Source: Paraphysomonas bandaiensis (Eukaryota > Protista > Chrysophyceae). From it: DNA of 64,000 bases. Location: the NCBI GenBank assembly GCA_965644295.1, contig CBFFRP010000367.1:1-64000 (forward strand), read 5' to 3'. Below are positions 28,101-60,207 of the stretch, in pieces. The notes under the pieces were generated by a model. The model did not search any database. It saw only the letters and a program-made list of their open reading frames with translations, and was not told where the DNA came from. The translations under genes and the position numbers were made by a program. Each line of letters starts with the position of its first letter. Position 1 is the stretch's first letter.

Positions 28101-31100
28101 CAAGAAGCTGCTCCTCAAGCCCTTTCTGTGTAACAGTGAAATCTACAATTGTACACTTCGATTGATCTTCAGGGCTGAAATGGGGGTTTGCTAAGCGAGT
28201 ACACATGTACAGCATGAAATCATCCACGAAGTCACACATTTTTCCAGATATGGAAATATATTTTGCCTTCGCTTTCACAACAACTTGCTTCTCGAGAACA
28301 GACGTAATCATAGGATCCAACTCTTCTTCGACACCTGTGACAATACAAGCTTTTCCTTCTGCCATACAATATTCCAGATGCTCACGAAATCGAGGTTGAT
28401 TAAACGATGTAGTACCAAATGAAGGCATGCGTTGCTCTTCATGATTACATATCCAGTTAATTGCTTGGCCTTGAGGATCAATAAGTAATGGGTATCGTGA
28501 ACTCCTTGTTACTAATATACCGTTCTGAACGGATAAAGGGTCAGTGGGTAGGCCTTCCAAATTCCAGTCCCCAATAGTTCCTATGTCTACCAAAAAGCTG
28601 GTCAAATCTAAGGAGTGAGACATAGGAATCTGTCGGTCACGAAGATCAGCGAAAAGCCGAACTCCAACAAGGTAATCCCTAAAATCTTGGTTGAATGGGC
28701 CACAGTATGCAACAAAAGCACAAGCTCTGGCAACATCTCCAACCAACCGAGTTTTGATATTCGCAAACTCTTCGCTGTCATTATTCCAACGCTCTCGTTC
28801 TCCAGCTAATCCGCTAATAAGCGCTGTTGCCTGCTCCATTCTCTTCTTAGTGTTGGCAGCATTCTCTTCAATAGCTCTCTTCGTCGCAATTTGCTTGTCA
28901 AAGTCCGCTTGAAGCCCAGCAAGTACATCTTGACACGCTCGCAGCCTCATTTCAGCACGTCCCAAATCCCTTTCTGCATCTCTCAAACGAGCCTCCGCCA
29001 CACGGAGTGCTTCCAGCTTTGGTTTAACGATTTTAGAAGCTTCGTGATAGTCTGCCATCGCACGACACCAAGTGCACAATCCTTCTGCTGCGCGTGAGGC
29101 GTTTCGTGCAACTACTGCATTAAATTCATCCAGCTCCAAATACGGGGCCATCAGCTCAACAGTTTCATCATTGATGAAATCCTTTTCAAACTTCGAAAAA
29201 TGGAAAATACTCTGCAAAAATCTGGCGTCCGAAAGCATTCCCCCCATGGCGATCTTGTAGCTATCTTTCACAAAATTGAATGTACGTTTATCTTTGCCGA
29301 TCCCTAAGCTCACTTCTGCCATTTCAACTCGACCAAGCTTTTCCATTTTTAATACAGACACGCAATCAAAAATTAGCTTAATGATATCACTAGGCTTTCC
29401 CAACTTTTTGAGTTCGTTCAAATCATTTGGCTTAATGGACGTGGCCGCCCGTTCAGCTTCATCTAAGAACGGCTGAGCTTTAGCTAAATCTTCCTCACAC
29501 TCTCCTTTCTCACCAGAAATTCTCTCTGCATCTGCTTCACACGCCTCTTTTACTTTAGCCACGGCATCAGCTTCTTTTTTGGCTTCCATGGAGCTAACTT
29601 CCAACTTACTTAACATTTCATTGGTAGCTTCTTCGGCTACTTGGAGTTTAACCTCCTCTTCTGCCAGGACTATTTTCATTCGCTCCACATCTTTAGCACC
29701 AGATGCCAGCTTTTCAAGACCTATTTCAACTCTGCTTGCTTTGTTTACGATTTCCTGGCATTTAGTGGAGTACATACTCGAGTAGTCATTGAGAAAAGAA
29801 AGAAAAGATTTTGGAGTTTGGTACACATGCCGTCGCATCTTTTGAAAGTATTCTTCACAACTATCCATCACAATCTTGTGAGTGATTCCCATGTGAGTTA
29901 TAATTTCCTGCTTGACAGTATCCGTACAGTCTAAAGTCATTTCTTTTATATATCCTGTGCTTACGGCGACAAGAGCTTCAGCTGGCCATGCCAAGAACCA
30001 ATCGATTGTACATCCAGCTACAATTCCTGGGAACCTTCGTGCTCTCTCAGGAAACTTTGCGCTCACTGGAGACATGCACAGCGCCATGTGCAAATTACTT
30101 CGAACGCGGTCAATAAAAAACTTGACTAAGTTGTCCGGAGTGTCCTCAAAGTCAGGAATCTGCTTGATAGCAAGAGAGCGCAACTCAGCGGCCATCACAA
30201 TTAGTTCATCCTTAGGAAACAGATTTGGTACTTCTCCGGTCGTTAGAACTGAATTTATCACTTCAAGAAAGGACTCATCCTTAATTTCAGCTTCCGTGAA
30301 CAAAAATGTAGTCCTTTGTCCCTGTCCACCGCACGCCTTATACAGCATGCGTAAATCATCCAAAAGACTATTCATGTTGTATGACTTCGATATACTGATT
30401 TGAAATAACTCGTAATTGGAGCAATATGATGCCAGCTTAGTTAAGCTTTGCTTTCCACTTCCTCCAACACCAACGAAGAGAATACTCCCCTTTGGCATAC
30501 CCAAACAACGGGATATACGCATCAAGTGCTTCATCGCATCATCAAACAAAATCAAATTCATTTGTTTCGCCGGGTGCGCTTCGTTGTATCTGTGCAGAAA
30601 TGTTTGGACTCTCTCGCGCAACGACTCCAGGGGACCACCAAGTTCATACACGAGAGGGGCTTCAGCAACAAGAACGCCATCATCATCGTACTCATCATCA
30701 CGCAAGAAGTCCACAAAGTATTGAGGTTCAATCAAATCTTCATAAGTAAATTTCCCTTCATCTGATTCTGATGCAGTGGATAGATCAGCTGGAGGTCTAG
30801 TCTTCAATTGACTACTTCCCAGTCGCTTAGGTGGGCCTGACGACTTTGATCTAGACCTGGAGTCCGCCTGCGGCTTATCCATTGGGATATCAAGCAAATT
30901 CCTGGTACATTCATTTAGTTGATCCATGAAACGATTCTTATCCTGGATAGTTGTGAGCTTATCACAGAAAACTCTCTCGCACTCGTGCCTCCACAGCAGC
31001 AAAAATATCTTCGCATTTGGAACACTGGCACGAGGAGTTCGTAGTATGCCCTGGAACACACGACTGAGCTCTCGTAAATTGAAAAGGTAATGAAATTTGC

Positions 31101-34100
31101 TTGGCGAAGGAAGCATTTTCGCTCGCATCCATGTCCATAACTGAACAGATGTGTTCGGAAGGTGCTTTACAAAATGTGCAAAGTCATGCGGCACATTCAC
31201 AAATCTTCCCGCCAACATTTGACCATATATCTCATTGATCGCCTTGTGTGAAGGAAGATTCATGTTAAAAATAAAAAAGTGTCGCTTTAGTCGATTGGGA
31301 ATATCCTGTCGGCCACCACCAGGATGTCCCATTGCAGCAACATACATTAAATCTTCTATATGCTTCAAATCACCTCGTTTGTCTTTGTCCAAGAAACAGA
31401 ACCCTGAGGTTTCAACTAATTGTCGAACCAACTCAAGCGTTGGTTGATCTCCCCACATATTCTTTTCTGGCATACTCAAGTCGTCCATAAACACAGTCAT
31501 CGTCTTGCCACCAGGAGGGCCAAATGACTTTCCTCCACGCTTATCCAACTCTGATTCAAGGGTCTGCTGAAACATCGCAGGAGACGTCGCCGACGAAAAA
31601 CACACCTTTTTTACTTTAAAATCATCGCGCTCCCTTTGAATATCCGAGAAAAACATCAGTGCAGTTGATGTCTTCGCTGTTCCCCCACTACCAGTCATCA
31701 GTGAACTTCGCCCTTGCATATGCATTTGACGCAAAAGAAAACTCGCTCTCATTGTGTCAACAGTTGGTACCAACATGCTCGAAAAGTCCGGTTCTTCCAG
31801 CATTGTCGGATACGACCATACAGGAGCAGTCCACTTATCCCATTCCATCGAGTCCGGATTGACGCGGTAGTCAAAAAGATTTTCATCCTCACTCTGAAAA
31901 TTCGGTAATAAACTCCTATCTGACTCTGCCAAGGACATCAGATAATGACAGAATTTCGATCTATCTTCAACCTCCAGAAGACCACCAACGGACCAAGTAA
32001 CCGCATACAAAAAAAGTCGTTCAATTTCCTGGCGTAATTCCTCCGGACTAGTTGCAAGATCCGCGCCTGTTAAAAGGGCATCCAGTAAATCGCAACAGCC
32101 AGAAATAATGCCAACGCGCGATGCTTGCATCACTGGTTTACATACTTTCGTCATAAATTGAAATAGATGTCCATAGCTTTTAGGGCCCGAGCATGACCCC
32201 ACATATCTTAAGAAACATTCCTGGAATATTGGAGCCAAATTAGGGTTCTTATTTTTCAGCCATGATTGGAGCACCGGCTCCCAGTCAAGATCGCTGTCAG
32301 ACACAAATATGATACCAGCTCGAGACACTGTTGCAGGTGACGCATTTCGTAAGTCTTCCACTTCGAACATAAGCTTAACATTATCAGTCATCGGGATTCT
32401 GTCACCATTGGCTAGTGTCAAAATTTTATTGTCATCCAAAACAGTGTTCAAGTTCTCAATCCACAAAGCATCAACAGGGCCATCACAAATAATCCATTGA
32501 ATGTCTTTTCTGTTGCGATCATTGAACTTTGCCCACATTGTCGCAAAAATGCCATCTAACCATTCTCCAGATAATTTGTCAGTTTCGCCAAACATTTCTT
32601 CGGCCCTGATAGCCTTTGGATTCATACGCGAACGCTTGTGACTCACGCCAGTTGTAACAGAGAGTGAGTCCTGCAAGCATGATATAATTTTACTCTTGCC
32701 AGCACCGGCAGGGCCAACCATCATGATTCCATGTCGAACGAGAGTTGTCTCATACAGCTGAATAACCTTTATGCTCCACGAAGGGTGCAAAATCAAATTG
32801 GCACTTTCAACAGCATTTTGAAGGGCAACTTTCAGATCATTGTGTTGAACTCCAGTAGGAATGCCAAGTGCTGGAAAGAGGTCAGAAATTAGAGAAAGGA
32901 AAAGTGGAACGTCTTGTGCAACAAGTTTCGACAGATTCATATCTCTCAGGGTACTCATGAGAACTACTTCTTCTGGGTCTTTGGGTTTGTCACGCTTTGT
33001 TTGTCCAGCTGTACGTAGAACCGACAATATATTTCGCAAGCCAAAATCATAATGCTTCTGCTGCGACAGCTGTTGCTCACATAGATGATAAAGGACAGCA
33101 AATTTTCGGGCCAATTCAGAGAATCCTTGGTATCCGACGGAACACAACTTGACTTTTATAATGATTTCTTTGTCTGGGACCATCATTGCAACCCCTCTAA
33201 ATAATGCTTTTAGATTTTCCGGGAGCTCCTGCCTTCCCTGATATCCTGGGTTCATTGTGATAAAATACCCAACCTGATCATTGAGATAAATCTCTTGACT
33301 ATCGCCTGGAAAAGTAAAGCTATGTGAACCATTTCTTTTAGCGTTTGTAATTGCAAGAATCTGTTGGGCGACAACAGAAAGCACAGGTAACTCAATTCGA
33401 TTAAACTCATCAAAGCAGCCCCACAGGCCGGCTTGGCAGAGACCTTTAAAAATCCGAGCCATATCAGTGTATCGTTGTTGGTCTGTGCAGTTAGTTACAA
33501 CAACAAACACTCCAATTGCCCTCCCCAAGTCTTTGACTGTTTCCGTTTTGCCGGTACCTGCCGGACCTGCTGGGGCTCCACCAAGACACATGCCCATGGC
33601 TTGGGAAAGAGTTATGAAACATCTATCTGTCAGAGGAGTTATAACCAGCCTCTCTTTACACCCAAGATACTCGAACCCATATTTGTAGTCTACGTCACAT
33701 ATAGATATCACACACGCCCCATTTCCATGAATGTCAGAATTCTGGTTTTGCCATGAAAAGCGACATTGCTTCAGCCACTCAAAATCGTTGGCATCGCTTA
33801 GTTTTCTCTCTTTAAACATCTTTAGTAAGTCTGCAAATACATCTCTTTGATGAACCTGAATGGTAACCAGAGTTTCAACTTTGATTCGATTCATACGAGT
33901 GCCTAGATCTTCGAGGCACCAAGATGAGAGCTCTTGTAGAACAGACAATTGGACGCGGCTATTTTCCAACATGGCCGCTTTATTTTGCTTCGCCTTTGAC
34001 AATGCATCATGGCACTGCGCCGTCCAACTTAATTGTATTCCAAGTAATGCGAATTGCCCACATGTATCATTAACAAATGATCGTAGTTGCTTTGACATAC

Positions 34101-37100
34101 ATTCCATCGCGCAAATCTCACACAAGTTTTTCATTGAACGCTGCATTTCTGATTCAATTACACCGAGCCAATCTTCGATGTTACCCTGTGCTTTCACAGG
34201 TGTAGATAACTCAACCGTTTCCTTCGCCTGGCCGATAGACGATTGGAATTGAACGATAAGCGACCTGTCAGACTTGCTATGAGTAACCCTATCGATACTG
34301 TCAAACACCTTCTCGTAGTATGGCTGCATCTGCTGAGGATCAGAACCTTGACTCAGAATCAATAGCAATACTGGGTTGGAAACAAAATAAAACCGAGGAA
34401 ACTTTCCTCGCTTTTGCTCCAAGTACCCCTCTAGTGACTTCTGACATTTCTCAAGCTCACTGTACAACGCGGGTAAAGTGATTCTCAGAAGTTCATTGCT
34501 ACAACACTGCACCACTAGCTTGGTTTCAGATGCACGATGCATTAACTTTTCCCAGTCCTTGTTAATTTTAGCAAACTTCTTCGCTTCAATAGGCATTTGT
34601 TTCGCAATGTCCCCACCAAGAAACACACTCTCAAGAGAAGTCCATAACATTTGTACCTTAACCCACATTTCCAGTATATCGGCAGTATCAGATAGTTGTG
34701 TCAGGAAACGCTGAACTTCATCTTTAAATGGGGCTACGTGCCTGACACTCAGTAGAGTTTGCAACTGAAGTTGCGCTTCCTCGAGTTCTTCGATGACAAA
34801 TCCAAACGCTTTGAGAACGGGAACATCTCTATTCTTCCACACCGCAAATTCGAAACACGCTCCTTGCCAATGCTCTTTTAAATCAGTTACTTTCTTTTCA
34901 ATTTGTAGCTGCTTGTCTGCGCCGTCACAAACTTCTTCCACCGCATCTTTAATTTCAAGAATAGTTGATTGCCAAATGTGAGCTAGGCTGAACTCAGGAT
35001 CACTGTAGGGTATCTTCTTACTCATATAAGAATTAATTTCATCCCAGTGACGTGGCTTGATGGACGGTTTGCTCATTTCCGTCAGAAGAGGAGTGAGTGT
35101 TGCCAAGTCTGTGATGGTACCCCTCACTTCAGCGTACGCAGGCCACTCCCGTAGCCTTTTAGGTAGTTTCTTGCAGCGAGAATCGTAGCCGTTGGCTGTA
35201 TCTGCTATTATGGGTACATTATCAGCGACCTCATCCCAGGGTATTTTTTTCCATGCATTGACACTTGTCGTCACATCCACGTAAAGGCCATACAGCTGAT
35301 CCAGCAACTGAATCTCTTTACGAGTCTTAACAAGCTCATTGAACCTTGTTGGGCGTAAAGCAAATAGCTCTTCACCTGCCCTATAAGTATCCATCTTACG
35401 CTCACGGACACTCAGCTCGTCTTTGAACTTTTTCAAACGTTCGACACCAATAGCTGGCTGAATGTTGGGTTGCATCGGTCCATTGGTCTCAAAATCCTTC
35501 CGCATTCCCCTCACATCGATTGCAAATTCACGAATGTCCCATATAAGCTGCTTCTTGTACACACCTTGAATAGAGCTCAAATTGTCTGCTACAAACTCAG
35601 CATACTCTATTAGCTTTCGCCACGACACCCGTACAGTAGACTTCTGCTCAATTTCTTCTTTATCCACTACCCCTCCAGGAAGGTAATGTTCAAGCATTTG
35701 ATACATATCCAAAATTGGAGTAATCTCCATATCAATCGATGACTCTTTCTCACGGACCTCTTTCAAAACATTCATCACGTATCTGAGAGAATCCAATGAT
35801 TGTACATCGAGACTAAGCTTATTTGTTGTCACTCTCATGTACTCGAACAGGTTATACATACTCTCTTTTGCCTGTAAATGCACCTTGTTGGAATATAGAA
35901 CTTTCCATTGCCTTGACTCATTTCGCAGCTGCAACTTAAGATTGGAGGTGTTGAGCATCAGTGCTCCAATGCTAAATACAGGCGCAATATGTTCAATATC
36001 TTGCTCGACCGCCATGAATTTCTTTAACTCCTCTTCGAAATCACTGATAGAAGGCTTCTTAGAGATAAAGCGTTTGTACTCAACCTCTTTATCCTCCTTC
36101 CACAACCAGTCATATTTGCTGAATGTGGACAAGTAGTCATGAACTTGGTTTTTTGTTCCATGCATGGCGCCTGTCAACAGTAAAACTGTCTTTATTATCT
36201 CAATGTCACAGCCAAGGTACGAAAAAAAAGATTTTCTTTTATTCTCTGGCACTTGCTGTTGCCCCCACTGCCACATAGCTTTCGAACACCCTAGCACAGC
36301 GACAGCAGCTCTGTTGATAGCCTTCTGAATGTCATCCAGCGAAGGACTCAAGCGTACAGAGGGCGCCGAAAGCTGCACATCGACTTCAAAAAAGGGCTTC
36401 TGTACGTTGAAAATCCCTGTCCCTGTCCTAGAGCATGTACGCTTCTTGATGTGATCGAAAGAAGTACGTGTACAATTCAATAAAGCCTGGTACGTAAGAG
36501 ATATAAAGTGCTTCTCAACTTCTAATATTTCATCCTGGGATACGGGGGCAACGCTTGGGTCGATCGGAAGACTGCTCATCAGGGTAAACAGGTCTTGGAC
36601 AGCGTTCTCTACCTCTAGGTCTTTGCTCACCAAATAAACTGAATTCTGTCTTACAGCCGTTTCTTGCATTTGAACGAACTCGTCTAGAGTGAGGCTCTTG
36701 TCCTGAGGTAGCTTGACTAATATGGCTCTGCTTATAGATTTGAGATTTTTCTGAATTCGGTTCTCAACAATATCGTTAATCTTGGTAACCAAGTCCTCTA
36801 GCTTCGCGAGTCCTTCGTGAATATGGGCTTTGTAGCTATCTATGTTCATGGAAGTCCAAGTAAGTGTCGTCATTCCTGGTCTTAGCTTAAGCTCAAGGGT
36901 CTGTAGATGAGGCTCTAACATATTGCGGGTCACAGGAATAATTTTCATTGTAATACGCTCATACTCCGACAAAATATATTTGAGGTCATGATAGTAGTTC
37001 TTGAACTTATCTTCTTGCAGTAGCACCATCTTCCCTCCCTCTGGAATATCCACGTCTAGCTTCGCTAAACACTTGGCCTCCCGAATAAGTTGAAAGAGCT

Positions 37101-39199
37101 CCTGGTCGAAGTTCACGTAGAGTTTTCCGGTAGTTGGGTGTCGAATGATGAGAGTCGCATGAAGCCCTGCCTTCGCTTGTTCTATACTCGAGCACCAGGC
37201 TTCGTACCACAGATACTCGAAGGCAATTAGAGTCCTTGCAACCTTGTTATACGTACGAATGATTTTTTTTGATTCCTTAGGGGCTAGTACAGAAGGGTTA
37301 CCCTGAAATTTCTTCATTGGGTCCTCTATCTTTCGCAGCAAGTGTCTAGCCCAAGCGATGTTTCCGGCAACAGGAGGCATGTTGCGGGGAATGGGAGGGT
37401 TATGCTTCAGTTTCTCATACAGTTGTTCCACACGGGTCAGCTCCAAACCATAGTTGTGAAATATAACCGTGAGCTTTGAATCCAAATCTTTGCGCAGGTT
37501 CTCCCTATGTAGAATGGATTGATACTTTTTCAAGAGCGAAAGGGATTGCTCAATGCTGCTTATGTTCTCAAAGGAACGGTTGATGAAGTGTTGCAAGGAG
37601 GATTCCAATTCGTTCATCTTCACATTAAAATCAACGTAGTCTCTATCAAAACGATTGCTGTGGAAATCAAGCAAATCGTGTCCTTTAGAGCGAAACTGGC
37701 GTACTATCTCCGTAAAAGCAGTCAAAAGAGGCTCCAGCCCCTCGAACTTTTGTTGTGCCAAGCTCTTAAACTGCTGCATTGTTGAGAACATATCCATCAA
37801 CTTAATAAGACGACGGCAAAATAGATCAAATTTTCCAAATATCTGCGTTTCCGAGAAATCAAATTGACGGCCTTTCGGCATCATCATGAGCTTGTCCTTG
37901 GTGATACGATACTGGTCTTGATACTCCTCATTTAACTGTAGACAGTTCTCAATGACCTCAAGTACTACAGCCAAATCTCTGTCCCATAGACGATCGGGTG
38001 GGTCTTTTGCATTTATAGCGACTTTACATGTTGCAATCATTTGGTTAGTGATCTTCATGAACAACTTGGTCATTCTCTCCGTCGTGCTAAAGTACCTAGC
38101 AATTGTGTGGATCATCTTTATCGCATTCATTAGTGCTGGTAAGGTGTCGATAATAGCAGCGGGGTTGTTCCCATACAAGGGATCAAAGAATCGTTCAAGG
38201 GTAGAAAGGTATTTTACGTTATCCTTGGCTTCGTTGGCGGCTTCCGTGATGTGAATATCGATCTCACGCCACTGTGCAAGCAGAGACTGTGCCCGCTGGA
38301 CATCCACCATTGAACTAACCCCAGAAGATGAATCACCAGCGCCACGAACAACAACAGCAAGAAGTGAAAGGACTGACTTGACACCCTTACTCTTTAACTG
38401 CTCCGTGATGGATGTCAGTCTAAATGCACCACAGTATTATAAAACGCATTAGCATTTCACAATGACGTCTTTTCTCTTACCTCTGCATTCGACTACGCCA
38501 ATATTCCAGCTCTGTATCAGGACCAGAATCAGCGGTTTCCCAGCGGTTCCTATCACTATCTTCAAGGTAGTGCTCAATATTTCGGCACCAATCTTGTAGA
38601 AGGTTAATGCATCCTGTAACTAGCACTACATCGCTCGTTGCAGCGTTGCCCATCACCTCAACCCTTTCATCAGGCTTTCGAAGCTCTAACCCACCGCTCA
38701 AGCTTCTTATGCTTTCCTGTAGACCCTTACAAAACGAATCAATCCCCAGTAAAAACTCCTGCCTCTGTTCTTCTGAGGCCTGACCCCATGTGTCTTTTCC
38801 AAGATCTTGTATGAGTGGCCGATAAACACAGCGCATCACAGCCTCCAGTGACTCTATAGGGTTTCGTATTACACCAAAGCTAATCGCACCATCATTTGCT
38901 TTCGTCGGATCTACGGCAAAATGATTATCGTTATCTTTGCCGCGTTTGTTCTTCATGAAATACACCCCAGCAGCTTTCAACGTCTTGAAGTCCCTGGAAT
39001 AAACAGTTAGCCTTTCTCTTCCACTTTCATCTGAGTCAATTGTGATTAATATTTTAGTTGGGCCATCAGCTGAAAAAAAATATTTAATATCGCTCAAGAC
39101 TTCTGGGAGAAGCATCATTTGCTCAATGTCATTCTCATCTCGCTCGAATCCTTCAGCAAGTCTGCTGATTATGTAGCGATGTCGAGCTAAGATGGACAT
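25160..39199 (-). CDS. Axonemal dynein heavy chain, outer-arm gamma type (DNAH5/DNAH8/ODA2-like), 4626 aa
   Basis: Exons 39199-38481, 38419-25847, 25798-25522 and 25471-25160 total 13881 nt in frame. P-loops GPAGTGKT, GPAGAGKS, GSGGTAKT and GVGGSGKQ; CFDEFNR; WIENLNTVLDDNK; C-terminal HWILRGVALLC. GTAKT in AAA3 and the tail sequence fit the gamma class. Confidence 0.95.
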
Positions 39200-41699: not shown

Positions 41700-44600
41700 T
41701 CATATTGTTGAGGTATGCATTTGTTGTTGAATTTCCAACAAAAACTCCAGCGCTACCGTTGCACCTAAGTCTTTCTTGCATTCGAGATTTTTCACTGCAG
41801 TTTCTACTACACTCTCAGCCTGAGGAAGTGACGTTAAAATGTTTTTTCCTCCGGTGTTCTGCGTACTTTCCACAACACACATCAGTATGGAAGCAGTCCC
41901 AATGCAAGATGGAAACTTCGACATCAGCTCAAGAGAAAAATTAACAAGAGGAAGAATATTCTGCGACTCTTCCCCTGAGTCCATATTCTCTACATTTCCA
42001 GTACACTTTAAGTAATTTGCAACAAGCTCGGCAGTTTTGTTTATCAGGTTTTCCCTCAACTCCACTTCTTCTTCGTCGTCCTCATCAGAAGAGACTTTCA
42101 ACAACTCCTCAATAAATACCAAAGGTACATCTACACCACCAAAAACGGAGACGTCTTGATCGTGATCCTGCCCAACAAGAGAAACTAAGGCACTACAACA
42201 ACAGAGGCATGACTCCATAGCACTATCTCCGCAGGTTTGCACCCCAGTGGAAAGGCCACTGAGCCTTCTTGAAGACGTGTGGAGAGAGGTCATGTCAAAT
42301 TCATGTAATTGAGACATAAGAGTCACAAAAGTATCTATTAATATCTTGACCCAGCCTGCTGATATCAAATTATCCCTGACACTCTTCGTAATACTTAAGG
42401 AAGCGATACATTTGCACACCATAGTGGTAATGCGGGTGTCAGACACTTCCAATCTATTCGCGGGGTCGTTGTTAACTTTGTGTAGCACTTCTACAAGGGG
42501 AATATATACCTCACATTCTGCAAACATGAGACAGTTCGCAGTATTCTCATTCGACAGTAAAAATATGACCTCCACACAAGCTTCGAAAACAACTTTCCAC
42601 TTCTGTGTAATGTCACCAAGGTACTTCTTCAACACAGTAACGATGACTTCGCAACCACCACTGGAACCAATCATGGACTGGACCTCCCTCGAGTTTCCAG
42701 CCAAGAGTCTCAATAATTCTAAGCACTCCAGCGTGACAGATTCAAGGAGGTAATGGGTGCGTAAGCAATTCACTGCAGCTTCGCATGCCCTACTCCAGTC
42801 GGAAATGGGGTTATCAGTACAATCATGACGATGATATACCTCAGAAAGGATGCTGCAACAATGCTCTGAAATAATGTCACTTACAAAGTGTGATAGTAGC
42901 GCATTTACAACAGCGTCATACAAATTACTTAATGGCCCGATAGCACCTTCAATATAACTTGATTCCATGCTGCTGTGGTAGAAAAAGAACCGCGAAATGG
43001 CGATACTTGAATACTCCACCACACCTTCCTCGTTCGAGTTGCGTACTAATGATGACACAAGTAATTTAAATACCCCAACTTCAGATAGCTTCTCAATATT
43101 ATACTTCGGAAGTGGGTCTGCATTTTGATTGCCAATAAGCTCAGATATGGCAGCAGTACACTGCTCTAACACAGAAGCATTCCCGTCCTTATACAATTCA
43201 AACCCAGTTACAACAATATCACAAGCCCCGAGAGAGCCGAGGGCCACAGCGTTCTCAGTATTGACGTGGCAGAGATTCCTTATGGCCCAGCATCCTTGCT
43301 CCACAATGACAGAACTATTCATATGATGACGCATAAGCTGTAGCATCAACTTGAACAGTGGCACGTTGGACAGGGCAGTGATACTATATTCGTGGTGATC
43401 ATCTGTGAGGTTCACAATTGCCATTAAACCCAATTCGGATATGGTAAGACTCTGAGTAAGACGTTGTAACACTCTAGTCATGACAACGACTATTCCTCCA
43501 TCACAGAGGCTGCATTTGTTTACATCATTGTGATCTGCAAGGTTTACAACTGCTCCGATGGCTAATTCGATGACATTTTCATCCATCTCATAACGCGACA
43601 TGGCGCTAATGACCGCTGTGCACCCTCCACATTTCCCTAGAAGAGCCTTGTTTCTATCATCAATTGCTAAATTCATAATTGCCCAACATGCGTTTCTGAC
43701 AACACTACTTGAGTTCAAATGGTTAGTTAGCGCACTGATAACCCCTTCACATGATTTAGATTGACCCAAACTGCTCTTTGCGCTGTCCTCTGACGCCATA
43801 CTGAGAACAATTTGGCAGCAGTGATCAACTACAGTGACATCACTTTCATACTGGGAAAGTACATTCCCCACCACTTCACAAACACCCGCCTCTTCTAATA
43901 CAGTAATATTCTGTGATACTGAAGCCAAGACCGCAAGACACTCGCACACCGCTTCTACGACGTTGCGTCGTTTATCGTTATTTACAGTGGAGAGAAGGTT
44001 ATCGCCAAGTACACTAGACTCATCCAGACAATACCTCTGCAGTAAAGCAACACTAGTTTCAGAGAATCCGCAGTTCCCAATAATGACTGCATCGCCATCG
44101 TGAGATAAGCACATATTCGTGAGTGCCTTACAACCCTCCACTGTAATTTCAGCATTGTCATCATCACTTTCATGAGCCCGTAGAGATCTCACTACCTTTT
44201 CAGCAGCATTGCAGTTTACAAAATCGGTCTTGAGCTTATCATTGCCCTGTATATGGGCGATGGATGATATACGACTGATCACGCGACACGCTGATAATGT
44301 CACATGCGCATCTGTGAGATAAGCCACCAGACATTCCACCACATACTCACACAGACCTTTTGCATTCAAACTAGCCATTTGGTTTTCAAATCGACAATCC
44401 AACATCGAGTCTAACAGAAGGAAGAGTATACCGAGACAACGTATTACCAACTCTTTTCGACCAGTGTGTGCCCTAAGCACTCTCACCAGGACTGCTATCC
44501 AATTTCTTGGTGGGGAAATATCTGTAGAAGAACCAAGAAGATATGGAGATCGGCCCGACTTCCCGCATGTGTGAAGAGAATACCCTACAAGAATTAGCGA

Positions 44601-47600
44601 AGCTTCCACAACGTCTGTATCATCATACAGGTGTTCCAGAACACGACACATAATATGGTCGAATGAAATATCATTCGACTGGTCAGGGCTATTTGAAACT
44701 GGACAGAGGGTACGCATAAAAGAATCGTCGGCGACAGCAACAGAATTCAGGACTCCTGTAGCAGCAGACACCACAACAGCATTATCGCTGTTTTCCTGAA
44801 GTACGCTCAAGAGCGCTGGTCCCACACCAGCACCACTGAGAGCAGCACACACCCTGGAGCTAGACTTCGCTACCGCCAATAGAGCACTGCAGCACGCTTC
44901 AATGACGTTTTCATCGGCTAGGTGCGCCTTCAGTGCTTCTACCAGAGCTATACCAACGCCCATCATATCCTGTGCGTTAGGACTACGCGATCCACTGCAC
45001 AACTGCATGATACTGCGACAGCAATGCTTCACGACCTCAAAGCTGCCGAGTTGATATCTCAACACGGCAACCATTGCCTCACATACAGGAGTGGACCTCA
45101 CACGCCTTAAGCCTTCTTCGGTCGAAGTTAGATTCGTAATAATTACACAGCTGTACTCCGTAATATAAGGATTATGCACGCGCGACAACAAAACGCCAAC
45201 GACATGGTCACATACACCACCATACAGCATACGCAACAGATGGGCACTATCCTTAGATAGCACCGCAAGAACCAAGCAACCAAACTTTGCAATGTTTTCA
45301 GTCCCAGAGTAGAGCTTTAGTGCTTCTATGGCACTTATCACAGCATGACAGTCCAGAAGACGCGGCATATTCGAAGCCTCAGTCGCCAAACTCACAACTG
45401 CACGCAGTGCACATTCAATCGCAAGCAAGTGATCCTGATCTTCAACAACTGGGGGTTCTAAAGCGCGATTTAAACTGGAAATGACAACTTGACATGCACC
45501 TAAGTTTCCAAGTATCGCACTGTAGGCCGATTCAATAGCAAGTTCACACATTGTCAAGCAAGCAAATCGCACAATACGGAGATGTGATGTATACGTTTTC
45601 ATGCAACGTATCAGGACATCACCTACGCTAGATGCCGTCTTCGCTGATATCATAATGATTTTTCCGCCACCACTGCCTGGCAAATAATCTGCAATATTTC
45701 CACCGCTTCCCACAGCAACTGCTGCTGCAATAAGTGCTTGGAGTAGCTGGCAGCCTTTCAGAGATATTTCCTTGCTATTGTTGTGAATGCGCAATATCTT
45801 TACCACAATGTCAAAAGCGCCCATATCTTCACCGAACCCACCACCACCGCGGCGTCCACCACCAGCACTTTTACGTTTCGAAGCACTCCCTGATGTCGTT
45901 GCCAAAGCAACCGAATCCTCGGCGACAACTCTGAGCACTGTGATCAGTGCATTGAATCCAGTTGAAATTACCTTCTTGCTCAGACTATTTTTTTGGATAA
46001 CTCTGAATATCACCGTGTTGGTTCCCGTGGCTGAGTATTTCAATGCATTAGTGCGGTTGTCAGTAGAGAGAGCCAGAACTGCAGCACAAGCCTTGATTGC
46101 AATATCCTCACTACCAAGGTGAAGCGTCATCGCAGCAATTGTTTTCTCACAGGCGCCATATTCGCCAAAGCGCTCTCTGTTTTTCCCATTATCGGCCGCA
46201 AGACAGACGATTGCATTAAGACAGAGGTATATGATACCTATGTTATCACTCTGGCCTTGACTGGCTTTGACAATTGCCTCGTCACTGGTATAGTTGCTGA
46301 TGATCTGGACCACCACTTCGCACACCCCTGCTTCTCCAAGTAAATCCTTTAGGTGGTATCTCGATGCCTTTTCAATATTTCCCCGAGGAGGCCGTGTACT
46401 GGCTAGAAAGCCAATGGAAACAAGTGCCTGCTCAAGCACCTCCTCGACATTCATGTACATTCGCGTCGATTTCACAAGAATCGATGGCACATCACATTCA
46501 GATAATCGAATGCAGTTCTCGTAGTTATCTCTCGCCAATCTCTGCACTGCCTTCCATCCCAATTCGGCAATCATATCATTATGACTATGTACTGTGATAG
46601 CCTGCAATAGCACTTCACATGCACCGCACTTTCCAGCAATGTTGCGGTTATCGTGGTCTAATACAAGCTTATCAATAGCCATACAGCCGAATTCTACTAC
46701 CGATTGATGATGCAAATGCCTTGACACACATTTGACTACCAACTCGCACACTCCTATTTCACCTAAACACTTTCGATTTTCTTGGCAAAGGCCAAGGTTC
46801 TGAATAGCCATAAGAGACCACGTAGTAATATCTTTTTTCTCCATAAATTTCTGCAATATCGTAATAATTACCTCGCATCCACAAGTAGCAAATCGAATAT
46901 TATTTTTTTCGTTGAGCGCCAAATTTATGAGTGCCCATAGGCTTTGCTTGAGAACATTTTCTGAAGAAATATATTTCCTGATTACCTTGACAACTGTTTC
47001 ACATGCTCCGGCATCGCCAAGTTTGGCGTTATTCGTATCTTCAGATCCCAGATTCATAGTAGCTTTGCATCCATATAGAGCTATTTTGTCACAGCCCATA
47101 TGCGCATTCATGATACCAACAATTATTGCTGGTAGTTCTAATTCTCCAAATCTAATGTTATTGGCATCGTTTGCTGTGGTTTTGTCCTGTCCATATCTGC
47201 TCAAATAACACACCGCACGGAGGCCATTTTCACACACGATACTTGAGTGGGGAAACGAAAACAGTGCATTGCGGACTTCATCGCACGCCCCTTCCTCTCC
47301 AAGAGCCTGTTGTCGTTCCGCGTTTCCCTCAGCTAGCTGAGACACACAACGAAGAGCGTTTGCCACTGACAGCTCACTCTTATTCTTCAATCCTCGTTTT
47401 AAGAGGACCAGGGACTCGGGCACCCCCACTTCTATGGCCTCGTCAGGTGAGGGGGGCGACTTAGTCAGAGTAAGAGGACTGGAAATTGTCAACTCATCTC
47501 TGACTGAGTTATCATGACAGAACTCAGCAGCTTCATTTGCATCAGGTTGAATTTGCGTAACACCAATATCATTATGCAATACAATGTCACTGTGAACCGA

Positions 47601-50600
47601 TACTTTCGACCCATTGGATGGTCCACAATCAGACAAAGTTCTCTCATATTGAACTTCTGAGAGTGCCCTCAGAGTGTCTGCACATATATTCGCCACTCGA
47701 GAATTATGTGCGAAATCTTTTACTGCCTTCGTCAACACGTTTCTGGCACCGGCAGCCATAAGCTGTGAATGGTTAGCGTCATGCAATAACAGACTTCTTA
47801 TCACACCACAACCCATCTCAGCCACCACAGAGTAAGTATCGCCTGATGTTCTACCTTTTCGGCGGTACGACTTGATAGCACGAACGACCACCTCACACGC
47901 GCCAGCAGCTGCAGCAGCAGCTGCTGCATCACTAACACCACTTCCTGCATCTTCACTTGTTCCAATTATATGTTTTAAAGCTACAAGACCATGTTCCACA
48001 ACACTTTCACACCCGGGACTGCCTACATACCGACCAATCATGTTGATCACATTCAGGCTGATATCGGGACGAGTGTGTTGTTCTACAGTAGATCGCGATG
48101 AAGTGTATAAGTTGGCAATTGCCAAGCAGCATATTTCTTGAATAACTCCGTCGTCCACGTACTTATTCATAGCGTCCAGCAGTATACTGCCTCCATCAGC
48201 TTGGGCAATGACAACACAGTTTTCACAATCCAGAGTCAACTGTTGCACTGCCATACACCCATATTCACAAAGTGCATTCAGCTCGTCGTTGTCGCCTTCT
48301 ACACTGATATGAGCCTCTAACGCCTTCAAAACATGGTCACATACTCCCGCACGGCCTAGAGTTTTTCTATTTGATTCAGAAAGTGCTAAATTCTGAACAC
48401 CAATCAGCATAATAGTTAGCATGTCAACAGGGGTGTGTTGCCACAGCTTCAGAAAAGACGCTAAGTATTCACAGCCTCGGGACACGCCAATTCGAGCATT
48501 ATTCTCTGCACACAGAGCCATATTCACAATTGCCCCCCATCCTTGCTTCACAACATCTAAGAGATGTGACTCACTGCTATAACTACCTTGAGGATCAGAC
48601 TTGATGGTATCTTTGTACTGCTGACGAAGTATCTTAAGAACGATCTCGCATGCACCAAGTGCTCCTAGTTTATCATTGTTAGCTTCGTCTGAAGCTAGAC
48701 TAGTTATGGCACGAAAACTCCACACGCAGAGAATACTGCTGTCACGTAGAGTGTCGCCACAATGCTCAAGCAGGACAGACACAACCGCTTTACACAGCCC
48801 CGCCCTCCCTAGAGCGGCGACATTATAAGGATTCGATGTGATCTTACTGGTACCATATCTGCACATCCAACATATGGCTTCCAGACCAGCCTGACAGACA
48901 ATTGTCGACTCTATCATCGGTAGCATAACATGAGCAATCAATTCGCACGCCCCACTTTCTCCCAGGATTTTTTGGTTGATACCTTCATTTCCCTCCGCCA
49001 ATTTCGCTATCAAAGACAATGCACAAGCACAATACTCCTCCGACTGATTCTTACCAGCGGCAATGCGCAGCACTTGCATCGCCTCCTCAACGTTGCACTT
49101 CTGTGCAAGTGACATTTCTGTACTGTCTAACGCTAATGCCTCAGTGTTCCTACCACCAGAGTCTTGCTCGCTATCTTCGTGCACTCTTCTAAACGATTCG
49201 TTCATGGCGCTCAAAGTGCAGTTATCATGCACATTTGACCTGCTACTCCTAGGTCTATTACCACTGACATCGCTCTCTCCGACATCGCTTGCTTCAGAGC
49301 TGCTCGAGCTGTCGTCCACACTATTGACTCTCGAATATTTTTGATTCAAAAGCAAAGACGTACCCAATCGCTGAGTAGTTGAAAAGCTATCACTTTGCTC
49401 GGAGTCATCGTAATCGTGGCGACTAAGGCTAGCCAACGCAGCCAGTCCAATACTTTCGATGTCTTCATTAGCAAAATGATCCTTTACGAGCCTCGTCACC
49501 ACCGTATATGCATCAGCGTCAGATAACATTCGCCGATTTTCATCAGAACTATGAGCTAATATTTGGACTGCTCCACATCCCATTTCAACGACTGCCTCGT
49601 TGTTACGGTGCATTTGTAATGCTCTCACAACATCTTCACATGCACCAGCAGCACCTAACTTATAACTGTTGGGCTGGTTATTCTCCGCGAGAACTCTAAT
49701 GGCCCAACAAGAAACTTCTGCCACAGTGGAGCTTCCGAGATGACTATTTAGCGATTTGCAAACTGCATCCGCAGCTCCTAGCGCACCCAAAACTGTTCTG
49801 TATTCGACACTGTGTTGTGCTAGATTTTTGATAGCCCAGCACCCAAGCTCCGCCACCACTTCGCAACTACTGTCTTCGCAATGCACAAGCAAGACTGGGA
49901 CTATACATTCGCACACACCAGCAACACCCAGACCGTTCATAATACTTGAACTACTCGATTCAGATGCACCGTCGTTACCTTCCGAGTCCGTCAAATTAAC
50001 TATAGTCCCGAATGCAAACTCGGCTAAGGCAGCGCTATCAGGATGCAACTGCAGCGCTGTTACGATGACATCGCACACACCACTCGAGACGAGGCGATTG
50101 CGGTTCTCTTCGTGGTTGTAGGTTAAATTCATCAGAGCCATACAACCCCTTTGGGCCGCACCCTCGTCTGCAATATGGATGCGAAGAACACTCACCACAT
50201 GTTCGCATACCCCAGCATCACCAAGCAAGTGGTTATTATAGTCGTTATTATTGGCTAAATTCTGAACAGCCATGAAGGCTTGAGTCGATATTTCCAGATC
50301 GTTGGGAAAACGTCCGAGTGCATTGACCACGAGCTCTGCTGCCCCCTTTAACCCCAGTTCATTTTTATTATTCTTGTTCAGTGCCAGATTTTGAGTGGCC
50401 ATGCACGCCCACAGGGTGAGATTTCTATTAGTCTGATTTGTTCTCCAGAAAAGTACTACTGCGGTGCATGCATGTGCCTCGCCTAGCCGAATGTTATTCT
50501 CAGGGCTGAGGGCAAGATTAATGAGGGCCCCCCAAACCTGGAGGCAAAAATCCTCGTCCACTACCATCCCAGCGCCTAAGCCATCCGTTGCATCAACTCG

Positions 50601-51923
50601 GCCGAGGTCCACAGACTGATACCGTTCAAAGATTTGCGTCACTGTATTACAAGCACCTTCCTCACCAAACCTCAAATTATTCGTCATATCAGACGACAAA
50701 TTCATTATCGCCTTACAAGCCCAAAATACAATTTCTTCGTTCTCAATATGTGACTCAGCTGCTAACACGACTGCCCCACAAACCCCAGCAGCACCAAAAA
50801 GCGATATATTCTGTGGGCTGGAAGTGTGTCGACCAATACCATATCGACTAAGCCAGCACACTGCTCGTAATGCCGTTTCACACACAAGGGCCGAGGAGTG
50901 CATATCTCTAAGGAGAGAGACTATGACCTCGCAACCACCAGCTGCCCCATAGGCCCGTTGGTACTCTTCACTTCCTTCTGTCAGTCCCGCTACTCCCGTC
51001 AAAGCTACCGCCGCCAGAGAAAAGTCGTTTTCATGTAGTGCCTGCTCCATTGCTTTCATCGTGTTTTCTACGGTAGGTTTGGAGGTGACAGAGAGATCAA
51101 CATAATTTTCTGCAAGAGCTTTGACGCAACTAGAACCACTGAGATTGGTCGCCCCATCAGTGCTTGAACCGCCTTTATGGGGCGAGAGCGATCCTGCAAC
51201 AATCAGGCCACCAGCTTTTAGTGCACCCAAAATAACCCTAGCATCGCCTGCATCCAAGACTACATCCTGCAAGAAATTCGGCTCCCTGTAGAGTTTTCGA
51301 CCCAATTTAGCTTCACTGCTTAGCCCCCTTCTGACAAAAGCAGCAGCATATGACTCTGCTCTTTCCGAAGTTAGGTCCGTGCACGATACAAGCCAGTGAA
51401 ATATGAGTTCTTCGCTTGCCGGTCGCGCAAGCTGCTTGGTGGTGTCTTCGAACGATAGGGACGAGGACATCTGAAGAAGAGAAGGACCATCTTGACTCCG
51501 ACCTTTTTTCTTTATTTCAACCGGTGCCGTCATTTCACAACTCCCCACAGCAAGGTGAGGCATTCCACTATTTTCCCGTGGCAGGAACAATGGTTCGTCC
51601 ATCATGATATCCGTCAGCTTTTGACTCAAACTGTTGAATTTATTCTGCATTTTACTTTTATTGAAGCTGCCAAGTATACTCTTTACAGAACATTTTTTCA
51701 AGAAGTGCTGGATATCAAGAAGTAGTGTTATAACGCGATGATAGATTCGTGGTGATATTGGTTCATTAGCCATGTAAAGAGACTGCACAGTTGATATCAA
51801 GCCGACTATTTTGGTATCTAAACGATAACAATTCTTCTTGTTGACCTTAACTTCTTTCATTAATCTATTTGTTTCGCGAAGTTTGTTCAATATATCAGAA
51901 TACATTTCAGCCATGTCTGACAT
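41700..51923 (-). CDS. Giant intronless protein (~3407 aa): MLKL/HeLo-like N-terminal four-helix domain, SAM-like domain and armadillo-repeat arrays
   Basis: Single 10.2-kb ORF, first ATG at 51923. N-terminus KEVKVNKKNCYRLDTKIVGL...KFNSLSQKL; SAM-like LIFHWL...YAAAF...GDARVILGAL; dozens of ~42-aa ARM units (LGxxGACE.VV..L..H...V...GC.AI.NLA). Confidence 0.85.
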   Translation of the reverse strand: MSDMAEMYSDILNKLRETNRLMKEVKVNKKNCYRLDTKIVGLISTVQSLYMANEPISPRIYHRVITLLLDIQHFLKKCSVKSILGSFNKSKMQNKFNSLSQKLTDIMMDEPLFLPRENSGMPHLAVGSCEMTAPVEIKKKGRSQDGPSLLQMSSSLSFEDTTKQLARPASEELIFHWLVSCTDLTSERAESYAAAFVRRGLSSEAKLGRKLYREPNFLQDVVLDAGDARVILGALKAGGLIVAGSLSPHKGGSSTDGATNLSGSSCVKALAENYVDLSVTSKPTVENTMKAMEQALHENDFSLAAVALTGVAGLTEGSEEYQRAYGAAGGCEVIVSLLRDMHSSALVCETALRAVCWLSRYGIGRHTSSPQNISLFGAAGVCGAVVLAAESHIENEEIVFWACKAIMNLSSDMTNNLRFGEEGACNTVTQIFERYQSVDLGRVDATDGLGAGMVVDEDFCLQVWGALINLALSPENNIRLGEAHACTAVVLFWRTNQTNRNLTLWACMATQNLALNKNNKNELGLKGAAELVVNALGRFPNDLEISTQAFMAVQNLANNNDYNNHLLGDAGVCEHVVSVLRIHIADEGAAQRGCMALMNLTYNHEENRNRLVSSGVCDVIVTALQLHPDSAALAEFAFGTIVNLTDSEGNDGASESSSSSIMNGLGVAGVCECIVPVLLVHCEDSSCEVVAELGCWAIKNLAQHSVEYRTVLGALGAADAVCKSLNSHLGSSTVAEVSCWAIRVLAENNQPNSYKLGAAGACEDVVRALQMHRNNEAVVEMGCGAVQILAHSSDENRRMLSDADAYTVVTRLVKDHFANEDIESIGLAALASLSRHDYDDSEQSDSFSTTQRLGTSLLLNQKYSRVNSVDDSSSSSEASDVGESDVSGNRPRSSRSNVHDNCTLSAMNESFRRVHEDSEQDSGGRNTEALALDSTEMSLAQKCNVEEAMQVLRIAAGKNQSEEYCACALSLIAKLAEGNEGINQKILGESGACELIAHVMLPMIESTIVCQAGLEAICWMCRYGTSKITSNPYNVAALGRAGLCKAVVSVLLEHCGDTLRDSSILCVWSFRAITSLASDEANNDKLGALGACEIVLKILRQQYKDTIKSDPQGSYSSESHLLDVVKQGWGAIVNMALCAENNARIGVSRGCEYLASFLKLWQHTPVDMLTIMLIGVQNLALSESNRKTLGRAGVCDHVLKALEAHISVEGDNDELNALCEYGCMAVQQLTLDCENCVVIAQADGGSILLDAMNKYVDDGVIQEICCLAIANLYTSSRSTVEQHTRPDISLNVINMIGRYVGSPGCESVVEHGLVALKHIIGTSEDAGSGVSDAAAAAAAAGACEVVVRAIKSYRRKGRTSGDTYSVVAEMGCGVIRSLLLHDANHSQLMAAGARNVLTKAVKDFAHNSRVANICADTLRALSEVQYERTLSDCGPSNGSKVSVHSDIVLHNDIGVTQIQPDANEAAEFCHDNSVRDELTISSPLTLTKSPPSPDEAIEVGVPESLVLLKRGLKNKSELSVANALRCVSQLAEGNAERQQALGEEGACDEVRNALFSFPHSSIVCENGLRAVCYLSRYGQDKTTANDANNIRFGELELPAIIVGIMNAHMGCDKIALYGCKATMNLGSEDTNNAKLGDAGACETVVKVIRKYISSENVLKQSLWALINLALNEKNNIRFATCGCEVIITILQKFMEKKDITTWSLMAIQNLGLCQENRKCLGEIGVCELVVKCVSRHLHHQSVVEFGCMAIDKLVLDHDNRNIAGKCGACEVLLQAITVHSHNDMIAELGWKAVQRLARDNYENCIRLSECDVPSILVKSTRMYMNVEEVLEQALVSIGFLASTRPPRGNIEKASRYHLKDLLGEAGVCEVVVQIISNYTSDEAIVKASQGQSDNIGIIYLCLNAIVCLAADNGKNRERFGEYGACEKTIAAMTLHLGSEDIAIKACAAVLALSTDNRTNALKYSATGTNTVIFRVIQKNSLSKKVISTGFNALITVLRVVAEDSVALATTSGSASKRKSAGGGRRGGGGFGEDMGAFDIVVKILRIHNNSKEISLKGCQLLQALIAAAVAVGSGGNIADYLPGSGGGKIIMISAKTASSVGDVLIRCMKTYTSHLRIVRFACLTMCELAIESAYSAILGNLGACQVVISSLNRALEPPVVEDQDHLLAIECALRAVVSLATEASNMPRLLDCHAVISAIEALKLYSGTENIAKFGCLVLAVLSKDSAHLLRMLYGGVCDHVVGVLLSRVHNPYITEYSCVIITNLTSTEEGLRRVRSTPVCEAMVAVLRYQLGSFEVVKHCCRSIMQLCSGSRSPNAQDMMGVGIALVEALKAHLADENVIEACCSALLAVAKSSSRVCAALSGAGVGPALLSVLQENSDNAVVVSAATGVLNSVAVADDSFMRTLCPVSNSPDQSNDISFDHIMCRVLEHLYDDTDVVEASLILVGYSLHTCGKSGRSPYLLGSSTDISPPRNWIAVLVRVLRAHTGRKELVIRCLGILFLLLDSMLDCRFENQMASLNAKGLCEYVVECLVAYLTDAHVTLSACRVISRISSIAHIQGNDKLKTDFVNCNAAEKVVRSLRAHESDDDNAEITVEGCKALTNMCLSHDGDAVIIGNCGFSETSVALLQRYCLDESSVLGDNLLSTVNNDKRRNVVEAVCECLAVLASVSQNITVLEEAGVCEVVGNVLSQYESDVTVVDHCCQIVLSMASEDSAKSSLGQSKSCEGVISALTNHLNSSSVVRNACWAIMNLAIDDRNKALLGKCGGCTAVISAMSRYEMDENVIELAIGAVVNLADHNDVNKCSLCDGGIVVVMTRVLQRLTQSLTISELGLMAIVNLTDDHHEYSITALSNVPLFKLMLQLMRHHMNSSVIVEQGCWAIRNLCHVNTENAVALGSLGACDIVVTGFELYKDGNASVLEQCTAAISELIGNQNADPLPKYNIEKLSEVGVFKLLVSSLVRNSNEEGVVEYSSIAISRFFFYHSSMESSYIEGAIGPLSNLYDAVVNALLSHFVSDIISEHCCSILSEVYHRHDCTDNPISDWSRACEAAVNCLRTHYLLESVTLECLELLRLLAGNSREVQSMIGSSGGCEVIVTVLKKYLGDITQKWKVVFEACVEVIFLLSNENTANCLMFAECEVYIPLVEVLHKVNNDPANRLEVSDTRITTMVCKCIASLSITKSVRDNLISAGWVKILIDTFVTLMSQLHEFDMTSLHTSSRRLSGLSTGVQTCGDSAMESCLCCCSALVSLVGQDHDQDVSVFGGVDVPLVFIEELLKVSSDEDDEEEVELRENLINKTAELVANYLKCTGNVENMDSGEESQNILPLVNFSLELMSKFPSCIGTASILMCVVESTQNTGGKNILTSLPQAESVVETAVKNLECKKDLGATVALEFLLEIQQQMHTSTI

Positions 51924-60207: not shown

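Follow-up and report, generated by a model that had tools for sequence, protein, structure and literature searches.

A chrysophyte gene pair that joins a predicted MLKL_N-type four-helix bundle to armadillo-repeat solenoids

The 64,000-nucleotide stretch analysed here (the window; positions 1 to 64,000, forward strand, of contig CBFFRP010000367.1, assembly GCA_965644295.1) derives from Paraphysomonas bandaiensis, a marine flagellate of the chrysophyte stramenopiles, and contains two paralogous genes that encode proteins of 3407 and 983 amino acids (aa), hereafter the long and the short paralogue. Both proteins start with a domain (the head) that we assign, as a divergent representative, to the MLKL_N superfamily, the four-helix bundles of the MLKL_N, MCAfunc, DUF7792 and RPW8-like type, and both continue into armadillo (ARM) repeats, with a domain of predicted SAM-like fold interposed in the long form. 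In animal necroptosis membranes are attacked by four-helix bundles of MLKL type, and related heads serve in the immunity of plants (MLKLs; helper NLRs of the RPW8/CC-R kind) as well as in Ca2+ signalling (MCA and ARO). A preliminary description of the window, made from its sequence, interpreted the pair as a sensor-executioner system of cell death or immunity. The interpretation we favour, by analogy with the plant ARO and PUB proteins and at what we judge to be about an even chance, sees in the head a regulated module for membrane engagement, by which a conserved ARM platform would be recruited to a membrane. The genes and their heads are located as follows.

41703..51923, (-) strand: long paralogue, complete coding sequence (CDS), 3407 aa; uninterrupted open reading frame (ORF)
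57259..60207, (-) strand: short paralogue, complete CDS, 983 aa; ORF and transcript match
51579..51923, (-) strand: head of the long protein, residues 1-115, predicted four-helix bundle of MLKL_N type; Pfam, AlphaFold, Foldseek and VIA
59848..60207, (-) strand: head of the short protein, residues 1-120, predicted four-helix bundle; 42-47% identity to the long head

The Pfam model MLKL_N (PF22215), which has a gathering score of 27 bits, matched the long head alone (the first 125-130 residues) with 27.2-27.4 bits (E value about 3e-6; 2.8e-6 at 27.4 bits). The score was 20.6 bits within the whole long protein, and 12.5 bits, below the cut-off, for the short head alone; five of the six family heads matched the model independently (Pfam, E <= 1). 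A second, weaker match of the long head was to DUF7792 (PF25055; 15.5-15.7 bits versus a cut-off of 27), the N-terminal domain of plant ARM-only proteins. By these scores membership of the long head in the MLKL_N family is marginal but consistent, and the short head is tied in through its paralogue. When the sequences of the Protein Data Bank (PDB) were searched with profiles built from two or from six heads, the top five matches were the N-terminal domain of human MLKL (E 0.02-0.07); the alignment spans the full length of the domain, and the K-K-x-C-x-x-L / hydrophobic-G-L-I stretch of helix 2 coincides in the two sequences. When the heads were scanned with Pfam, at E limits of 10 and of 1, neither HeLo (PF14479) nor RPW8 (PF05659) was among the matches, and the MCAfunc profile gave no match either.

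The predicted structure agrees with this assignment. AlphaFold2, supplied with a six-sequence alignment, returned a confident four-helix bundle (predicted local distance difference test score, pLDDT, 85; predicted template-modelling score 0.78) with helices at residues 2-22, 29-51, 58-78 and 89-109 and disorder beyond helix 4. In a Foldseek comparison with the PDB, ranks 1 to 9 were occupied by the human MLKL executioner domain (probability 1.00, template-modelling (TM) score 0.57-0.71, 19-21% identity, E 0.012-0.09), with mouse MLKL, AtMLKL2 and the CC-R domain of NRG1.1 (probability 0.94) further down the list. A VIA search of all representatives likewise placed human MLKL (6UX8) first (Z 11.3, root mean square deviation (rmsd) 2.4, 110 residues, 24% identity), mouse MLKL (4BTF) third (Z 10.8) and the NRG1.1 CC-R domain fourth (Z 10.4). 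Values of Z 9-11 were also obtained with unrelated helical bundles, whose identity to the head was 4-11% as against 20-24% for MLKL. Among the models of the ESM Atlas, the best match of the head was a streptophyte cluster of ARO type (100% DUF7792 and 100% Arm; TM 0.75, rmsd 2.8, 114 residues), the next structural matches being MCAfunc and MLKL_N/MCAfunc+kinase clusters (TM 0.72-0.78), while the clusters nearest by language-model features were MCAfunc/MLKL_N/DUF7792, PUB10_N and RPW8. The modelled fold alone is not decisive, but it agrees with the sequence evidence, and together the two support placement of the head in the MLKL_N superfamily. The preliminary description had placed the N-terminus in the MLKL N-terminal/MCAfunc family, with kinship to HeLo/HELL and RPW8 domains; the profile and AlphaFold/Foldseek comparisons, in which MLKL four-helix bundles come first, support this MLKL/HeLo-like assignment, with profile matches to MLKL_N and none to MCAfunc, HeLo or RPW8.

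Two further features of the heads were noted. Long-type heads are basic, with an isoelectric point (pI) of 8.6-9.6, short-type heads have a pI of 6.4-7.9, and the whole proteins are acidic (pI 5.2). Directly after helix 4, ahead of the disordered linker, lies an E-P-x-x-x-P stretch (consensus D/E-E-P-x-L-x-P; window 51579-51596, (-) strand, residues 110-115 of the long protein, and the matching place of the short form) that is invariant in all six members and could be a docking or processing motif. An acidic-dileucine sorting signal was considered for it and rejected, as D-x-x-x-L-L fits three of the six sequences and neither window protein.

The two genes are real, expressed and, where this could be tested, intronless. 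The ORF of the long paralogue spans 41700-51935 (-), with its first ATG at 51923 and its stop codon at 41700-41702, while that of the short paralogue spans 57256-60213 (-), with the ATG at 60207 and the stop codon at 57256-57258. The short ORF corresponds, with one residue of difference, to a complete ORF of the MMETSP1103 transcript set, which carries a Paraphysomonas label (P0001, 983 aa). For the long gene, culture-derived contigs of the same organism, probably of RNA origin, run without a joint over 47000-52083; their coverage ends ~160 nucleotides (nt) upstream of the ATG, the intergenic interval 52152-52500 is uncovered, and transcript ends cannot be proven from such contigs. Identical, colinear fragments of the long ORF, its head-coding part included, occur in three marine metatranscriptomes. 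Similarity between the two proteins is far above chance: BLASTP aligned the N-termini at 42% identity over 142 aa (E 5e-29) and the C-terminal regions at 30% identity over 729 aa (E 4e-97), in addition to several weaker ARM-to-ARM alignments. The two long intronless ORFs of the preliminary description, at the positions it gave, the peptides it quoted from both of them, and the helical N-terminus and the C-terminus that it regarded as shared are all borne out by these data.

The family is small. The 62.6-Mb assembly contains exactly two copies of this head subtype, so that the genome-wide count revealed neither an expanded family, as might have been expected of an immune sensor, nor a single-copy gene. 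An exhaustive HMMER search of 1.84 billion representative proteins with a profile of the two heads recovered five clusters only, with nothing else at E 0.001: the short protein itself (P0001), a long-type orthologue of 3482 aa (P0003), two long-type fragments (P0002 and P0004) and a short-type orthologue of 1140 aa (P0005). A word-index homologue search with the short protein found only the protein itself, and one with the long-type N-terminal alignment of 435-480 aa found none; this method missed P0002 to P0005 and is thus too insensitive. Metagenome scans with the head alignment and with an ARM/C-terminal alignment gave no confirmed loci. P0002, of the long type, and P0005, of the short type, come from one metagenome sample, and in a domain tree the short-type heads (window and P0005) form a clade with 95/100 support, apart from the long-type heads, which indicates that the duplication predates the split of these organisms. 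The long/short pair is conserved in a second organism. As no further match was found among the 1.84 billion representatives, the gene is not a broadly conserved housekeeping gene; the conserved single-copy housekeeping distribution that the preliminary description had named as refuting its interpretation was not seen, the family being lineage-restricted and present in two copies.

Behind the head, Pfam identified ARM-type families only (ARM_LRRK2, 2.3e-24; Arm, 3.5e-09; ZER1-like; Atx10), in keeping with the repeats originally described there and with the precomputed ARM_LRRK2 annotation of P0001. Neither protein contains a Pfam match to a kinase, a NACHT/NB-ARC NTPase, a U-box or a TIR domain, the first three of which the preliminary description had also failed to see. 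The parts of the two bodies are as follows.

51198..51422, (-) strand: predicted SAM-like five-helix domain, long type only, residues about 168-242; AlphaFold and VIA
49344..51011, (-) strand: ARM super-module 1, long protein, residues about 305-860; Pfam ARM_LRRK2 (best stretch 498-847) and internal BLAST
47604..49028, (-) strand: ARM super-module 2, long protein, residues about 966-1440; internal homology to modules 1 and 3
45894..47357, (-) strand: ARM super-module 3, long protein, residues about 1523-2010; internal homology
41739..43898, (-) strand: C-terminal ARM/helical region of the long protein, residues 2676-3395, homologous to the short protein; BLASTP, 30% over 729 aa, E 4e-97
57268..59313, (-) strand: ARM and C-terminal region of the short protein, residues 299-980, aligned to the long protein; BLASTP

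As judged from internal homology, the long form is built of at least three duplicated ARM super-modules. In BLAST comparisons of the protein with itself, residues 305-600 aligned with 966-1229 (32% identity, E 9e-39) and with 1523-1796 (33%, E 3e-45), and residues 958-1200 aligned with 1513-1731 (36%, E 3e-39). A Ser-rich polar linker (residues about 831-930) lies ahead of super-module 2, and more ARM arrays follow up to about residue 3150. In the C-terminal region of the long protein Pfam recognised Arm at 2755-2797 and a ZER1-like match; its final 400 aa gave sub-threshold TPR/ARM-like matches only and the final 374 aa of the short protein none, and the C-terminus is accordingly placed in no distinct domain family. 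No convincing transmembrane segment or signal peptide was found in either protein, the maximum 19-residue Kyte-Doolittle value, 1.94, lying inside an ARM core. Both proteins are cysteine-rich (4.2-4.4%), and a G-x-C-E/D motif recurs at many ARM repeat starts, with 24 occurrences in the long form. A complex prediction of the short head with its own ARM/C-terminal body scored 0.00, a result that gives no verdict and is evidence for neither side.

The segment directly behind the long head is SAM-like by its predicted fold, which is supported by the structural comparisons and has no counterpart in a sequence-profile match. AlphaFold modelled residues 165-245, together with two orthologous segments, as a confident five-helix domain (pLDDT 89). 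In a wide VIA search Sla1 SHD2 ranked first (Z 9.3, rmsd 1.8, 66/66 residues), followed by the SAM domains of CASKIN2, p73, ASK3, SARM1 and tankyrase at Z 6.9-7.8, and SAM or SAM-like domains dominate the list (Z 9.3-6). SAM domains also rank first in Foldseek, but at E >= 1, and the Pfam SAM profile has no match in residues 131-300 of the long protein at E <= 10. P0002 and P0003 retain the domain, which the short type lacks.

Sequence constraint is strongest in the ARM body. The long protein and P0003 are 41% identical overall and the short protein and its orthologue 28%, values at which synonymous sites are saturated. Between the long protein and P0003 the ARM super-modules are the best-conserved part (50-59%; module 1, 54-58%; module 3, 51-59%), compared with 44% in the head, 25-29% in the linkers and 21-35% in the C-terminal fifth. 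Best conserved as they are, the ARM repeats do not resemble a diversifying sensor; the small family and the constrained repeats indicate a conserved binding platform rather than a fast-evolving, expanded sensor family.

Heads of the MLKL_N type are also found on other proteins of this organism. When the assembly was searched with the Pfam MLKL_N model, two further genes scored above the cut-off. On contig C135 (20463-23504, (+) strand; L011:5463-8504) a 1013-aa ORF contains an MLKL_N match of 31 bits, followed by a protein-kinase fold and about 550 more residues; HRD is replaced with HGH and no DFG is recognisable, and the protein is thus a predicted pseudokinase. On contig C617 a 124-aa MLKL_N exon (30.6 bits; L012:6000-6374, (-) strand) lies just upstream of a 1765-aa ORF (L012:639-5936, (-) strand) that encodes a kinase, apparently active by sequence (HRD and DFG are present), and 35 Sel1 repeats; exon and ORF are probably one spliced gene. 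The hhalign alignments of the family head with the C135 and C617 heads are colinear but weak (probability 32% and 14%) and are not used as support. Profile searches of the genome with HeLo (PF14479) and PF17111 gave no matches, and neither did those with DUF7792 (PF25055) and MCAfunc, although the controls of the last two were also silent, which makes these weak blanks. As predicted from sequence, the head is a modular N-terminal unit that occurs on at least three kinds of body in this chrysophyte.

Comparison with characterized systems shows what is familiar in the architecture and what is not. The best sequence-profile and solved-structure match of the head is the executioner domain of vertebrate MLKL (PF22215; 2MSV, 6UX8 and 4BTF). 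MLKL, however, possesses a two-helix brace and a C-terminal pseudokinase, whereas the window proteins lack both and have a body of ARM repeats; moreover, the long head only just reaches the Pfam threshold, which the short head misses, and killing, a feature of MLKL, would be ascribed to the window head by analogy. In MLKL and the plant MLKLs, the head plus brace is cytotoxic once freed or oligomerised, and is buried by the pseudokinase in the resting tetramer (10.1101/681015). The plant MLKLs and the C135 and C617 genes similarly use the same head family as the N-terminal module of a multidomain protein, although there the bodies are kinases or pseudokinases. The head of the plant ARO proteins (DUF7792/MCAfunc+Arm), in contrast, has the same fold, and behind it, too, lie ARM repeats and no catalytic domain. 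ARO is bound to the plasma membrane via basic N-terminal residues, and its ARM part has been reported to activate CNGC channels (10.1101/2025.01.06.631460); by their pI the long-type heads are basic and the short-type heads near neutral. Against this likeness, DUF7792 scored below its cut-off and MCAfunc was unmatched, the U-box of the PUB proteins is absent, and the window proteins exceed the plant ones 1.5- to 5-fold in size; their ARM super-modules are duplicated, the long form has a SAM-like domain, and the C-terminal region is specific to the family. MCAfunc+U-box+Arm (PUB13 and PUB45) is the oldest streptophyte architecture of the domain and MCAfunc+Arm (ARO3) is an angiosperm type (PMC8049495). 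The head+ARM plan itself is therefore not new, having a precedent in streptophytes, and the stramenopile fusion may be independent of the plant one. A literature search yielded no paper on this head domain in stramenopiles, in line with the earlier remark that no characterized stramenopile example was known.

More distant parallels are found in SARM1 and in the NLRs. SARM1 (ARM-SAM-SAM-TIR) also combines ARM repeats, a SAM-type fold and a terminal effector, and its SAM domain is among the matches of residues 168-242. The window protein, however, has the opposite domain order (effector-SAM-ARM), a single SAM-like domain instead of two, no TIR domain and no SAM match at the level of sequence, such that the resemblance is in logic only. 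The RPW8/CC-R domains of helper NLRs (NRG1 and ADR1) and the fungal HeLo/HELL domains share the four-helix-bundle fold, as seen in the NRG1.1 CC-R match, while the window proteins have no RPW8 or HeLo profile match and neither NB-ARC nor NACHT. They likewise differ from NLR/STAND-like receptors in lacking a central NTPase, family expansion and a fast-evolving repeat sensor.

In the mechanism we favour, both proteins would be soluble and cytosolic and follow one plan: an N-terminal MLKL_N-type bundle, a disordered polar linker, ARM solenoids and a shared helical C-terminus. The head, basic in the long type, would act as the regulated membrane-engaging module and carry the large conserved ARM platform, with its bound partners, to the membrane, where the SAM-like domain may mediate self-association or multimerisation of the long form. 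The proteins would thereby function as a membrane-bound scaffold or channel activator rather than as a rapidly evolving immune sensor. This proposal draws support from the two copies, the five clusters that split into long and short types, the conservation of the ARM repeats above all other parts, the lack of a catalytic domain or transmembrane segment, the basic long-type heads within acidic proteins, the SAM-like fold, the expression in culture and in marine metatranscriptomes, and the streptophyte precedents. Several observations weigh against it. The head is nearer to MLKL_N (27.4 bits) than to the ARO-type DUF7792 (15.7 bits), and the head of MLKL is a killer; the short-type heads are not basic (pI 6.4-7.9), which weakens the case for a simple polybasic anchor. 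In the same genome a pseudokinase and a kinase also bear MLKL_N heads, and one head swapped among several regulatory bodies is the pattern of a death-effector domain. An oligomerising SAM-like domain beside the head, if the predicted fold is correct, is also the addition expected to potentiate an MLKL-type executioner. Finally, four-helix bundles are common, and at VIA Z values under about 13, such as the 11.3 obtained with human MLKL, a shared helical arrangement alone can suffice.

These points lead to the main alternative, which extends the reading of the preliminary description (ARM arrays as the autoinhibitory or ligand-sensing control of a pore-forming executioner) by the SAM-like domain. 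In it, the ARM solenoid would keep an MLKL-type head inactive until it is freed by a trigger, such as a metabolite, an infection by a virus or the modification of Ser-rich linkers, whereupon heads oligomerised by the SAM-like domain in the long form, or through other contacts, would permeabilise a membrane or pass Ca2+, with cell death or an alarm signal as the outcome. Such an NTPase-free switch, SARM1-like in its logic, is in our judgement less likely than not. It accords with the MLKL executioner domains being the nearest relatives of the head in sequence and among solved structures (19-24% identity, with the NRG1 CC-R domain at Z 10.4), with the location of the head at a free N-terminus, as in MLKL, HeLo and CC-R proteins, and with a SAM-like fold directly behind it whose match to the SARM1 SAM domain has a Z of 6.9-7.1. 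The MLKL_N+pseudokinase and MLKL_N+kinase+Sel1 genes make the head a modular N-terminal effector in this organism, and in plants and animals the head suffices for cytotoxicity when oligomerisation is forced (10.1101/681015). The window proteins, however, have no brace helices, kinase or NTPase, the short-type heads are without basic character, conservation is higher in the ARM modules than in the head, and with two copies there is no expansion; plant proteins of the same head+ARM plan, ARO and PUB, are moreover not executioners. The cell-death interpretation is an argument from analogy that these findings did not bear out, and it faces a credible non-lethal alternative. A more specific version treats the long protein of this phagotrophic protist as a switch for death or alarm, SARM1-like and free of an NTPase: its conserved ARM super-modules would detect an endogenous or viral cue and set free the SAM-like domain, by which the MLKL-type heads would be polymerised to form a pore in the membrane or a channel for Ca2+, and the short paralogue would serve as regulator or decoy. 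We regard this version as doubtful.

It could also be argued that the head does not act on membranes at all and is a protein-interaction or regulatory bundle, like the 4H domain of CBL or the CC domain of Rx, which binds RanGAP2, mounted on a cytoplasmic or cytoskeletal ARM scaffold with a role in, for example, trafficking or the organisation of flagellum and cytoskeleton. Most giant ARM/HEAT proteins serve as scaffolds, the short-type heads are near neutral, and VIA values were also high for a sperm doublet-microtubule protein (Z 11.2), the Rx CC domain (9.3) and the CBL TKB domain (9.2); plant MLKLs, for their part, associate with microtubules (10.1101/681015). The sequence matches of the head, however, are only to MLKL_N and DUF7792, with none to those other bundles, whose structural matches are at 4-11% identity in comparison with 20-24% for MLKL. 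We consider this explanation quite unlikely.

A heterotrophic chrysophyte with several proteins that bear this head on different bodies offers a system for asking what the ancestral job of the head was: membrane anchoring, ion flux or killing. The combination of head, SAM-like domain and giant ARM array is an architecture not described before, and widens the known range of the domain. If the head should prove non-lytic, the pair would support the idea that proteins of the head+ARM plan serve as scaffolds at membranes in distantly related eukaryotes. Were the head lytic, it would give marine grazers a candidate mechanism for dying in a regulated way, which would bear on bloom and virus-host dynamics, and a genuine death switch would, together with the MLKL_N-pseudokinase and MLKL_N-kinase-Sel1 genes, amount to a necroptosis-like executioner toolkit in stramenopiles.

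The neighbouring genes do not look functionally linked to the pair. Between the paralogues lies a spliced gene for coproporphyrinogen III oxidase (52820-54179, (+) strand; Pfam Coprogen_oxidas, E 1.9e-58, in the exon 53331-53840), and downstream of them is an uninterrupted ORF of 4155 aa for a dynein heavy chain (25843-38310, (-) strand), with matches to DHC_N1, AAA_6, the microtubule-binding stalk and Dynein_C. The Dynein_C match covers model positions 2-121 of 309 only, and a further exon of the dynein gene is probable. At about 52360-52760, some 440 nt upstream of the start codon of the long paralogue, lies a long microsatellite of (ACAT)n type; a repeat of the same kind (L012:6505-7503) is found a short way upstream of the MLKL_N exon of contig C617, and such repeats are probably common in this genome.

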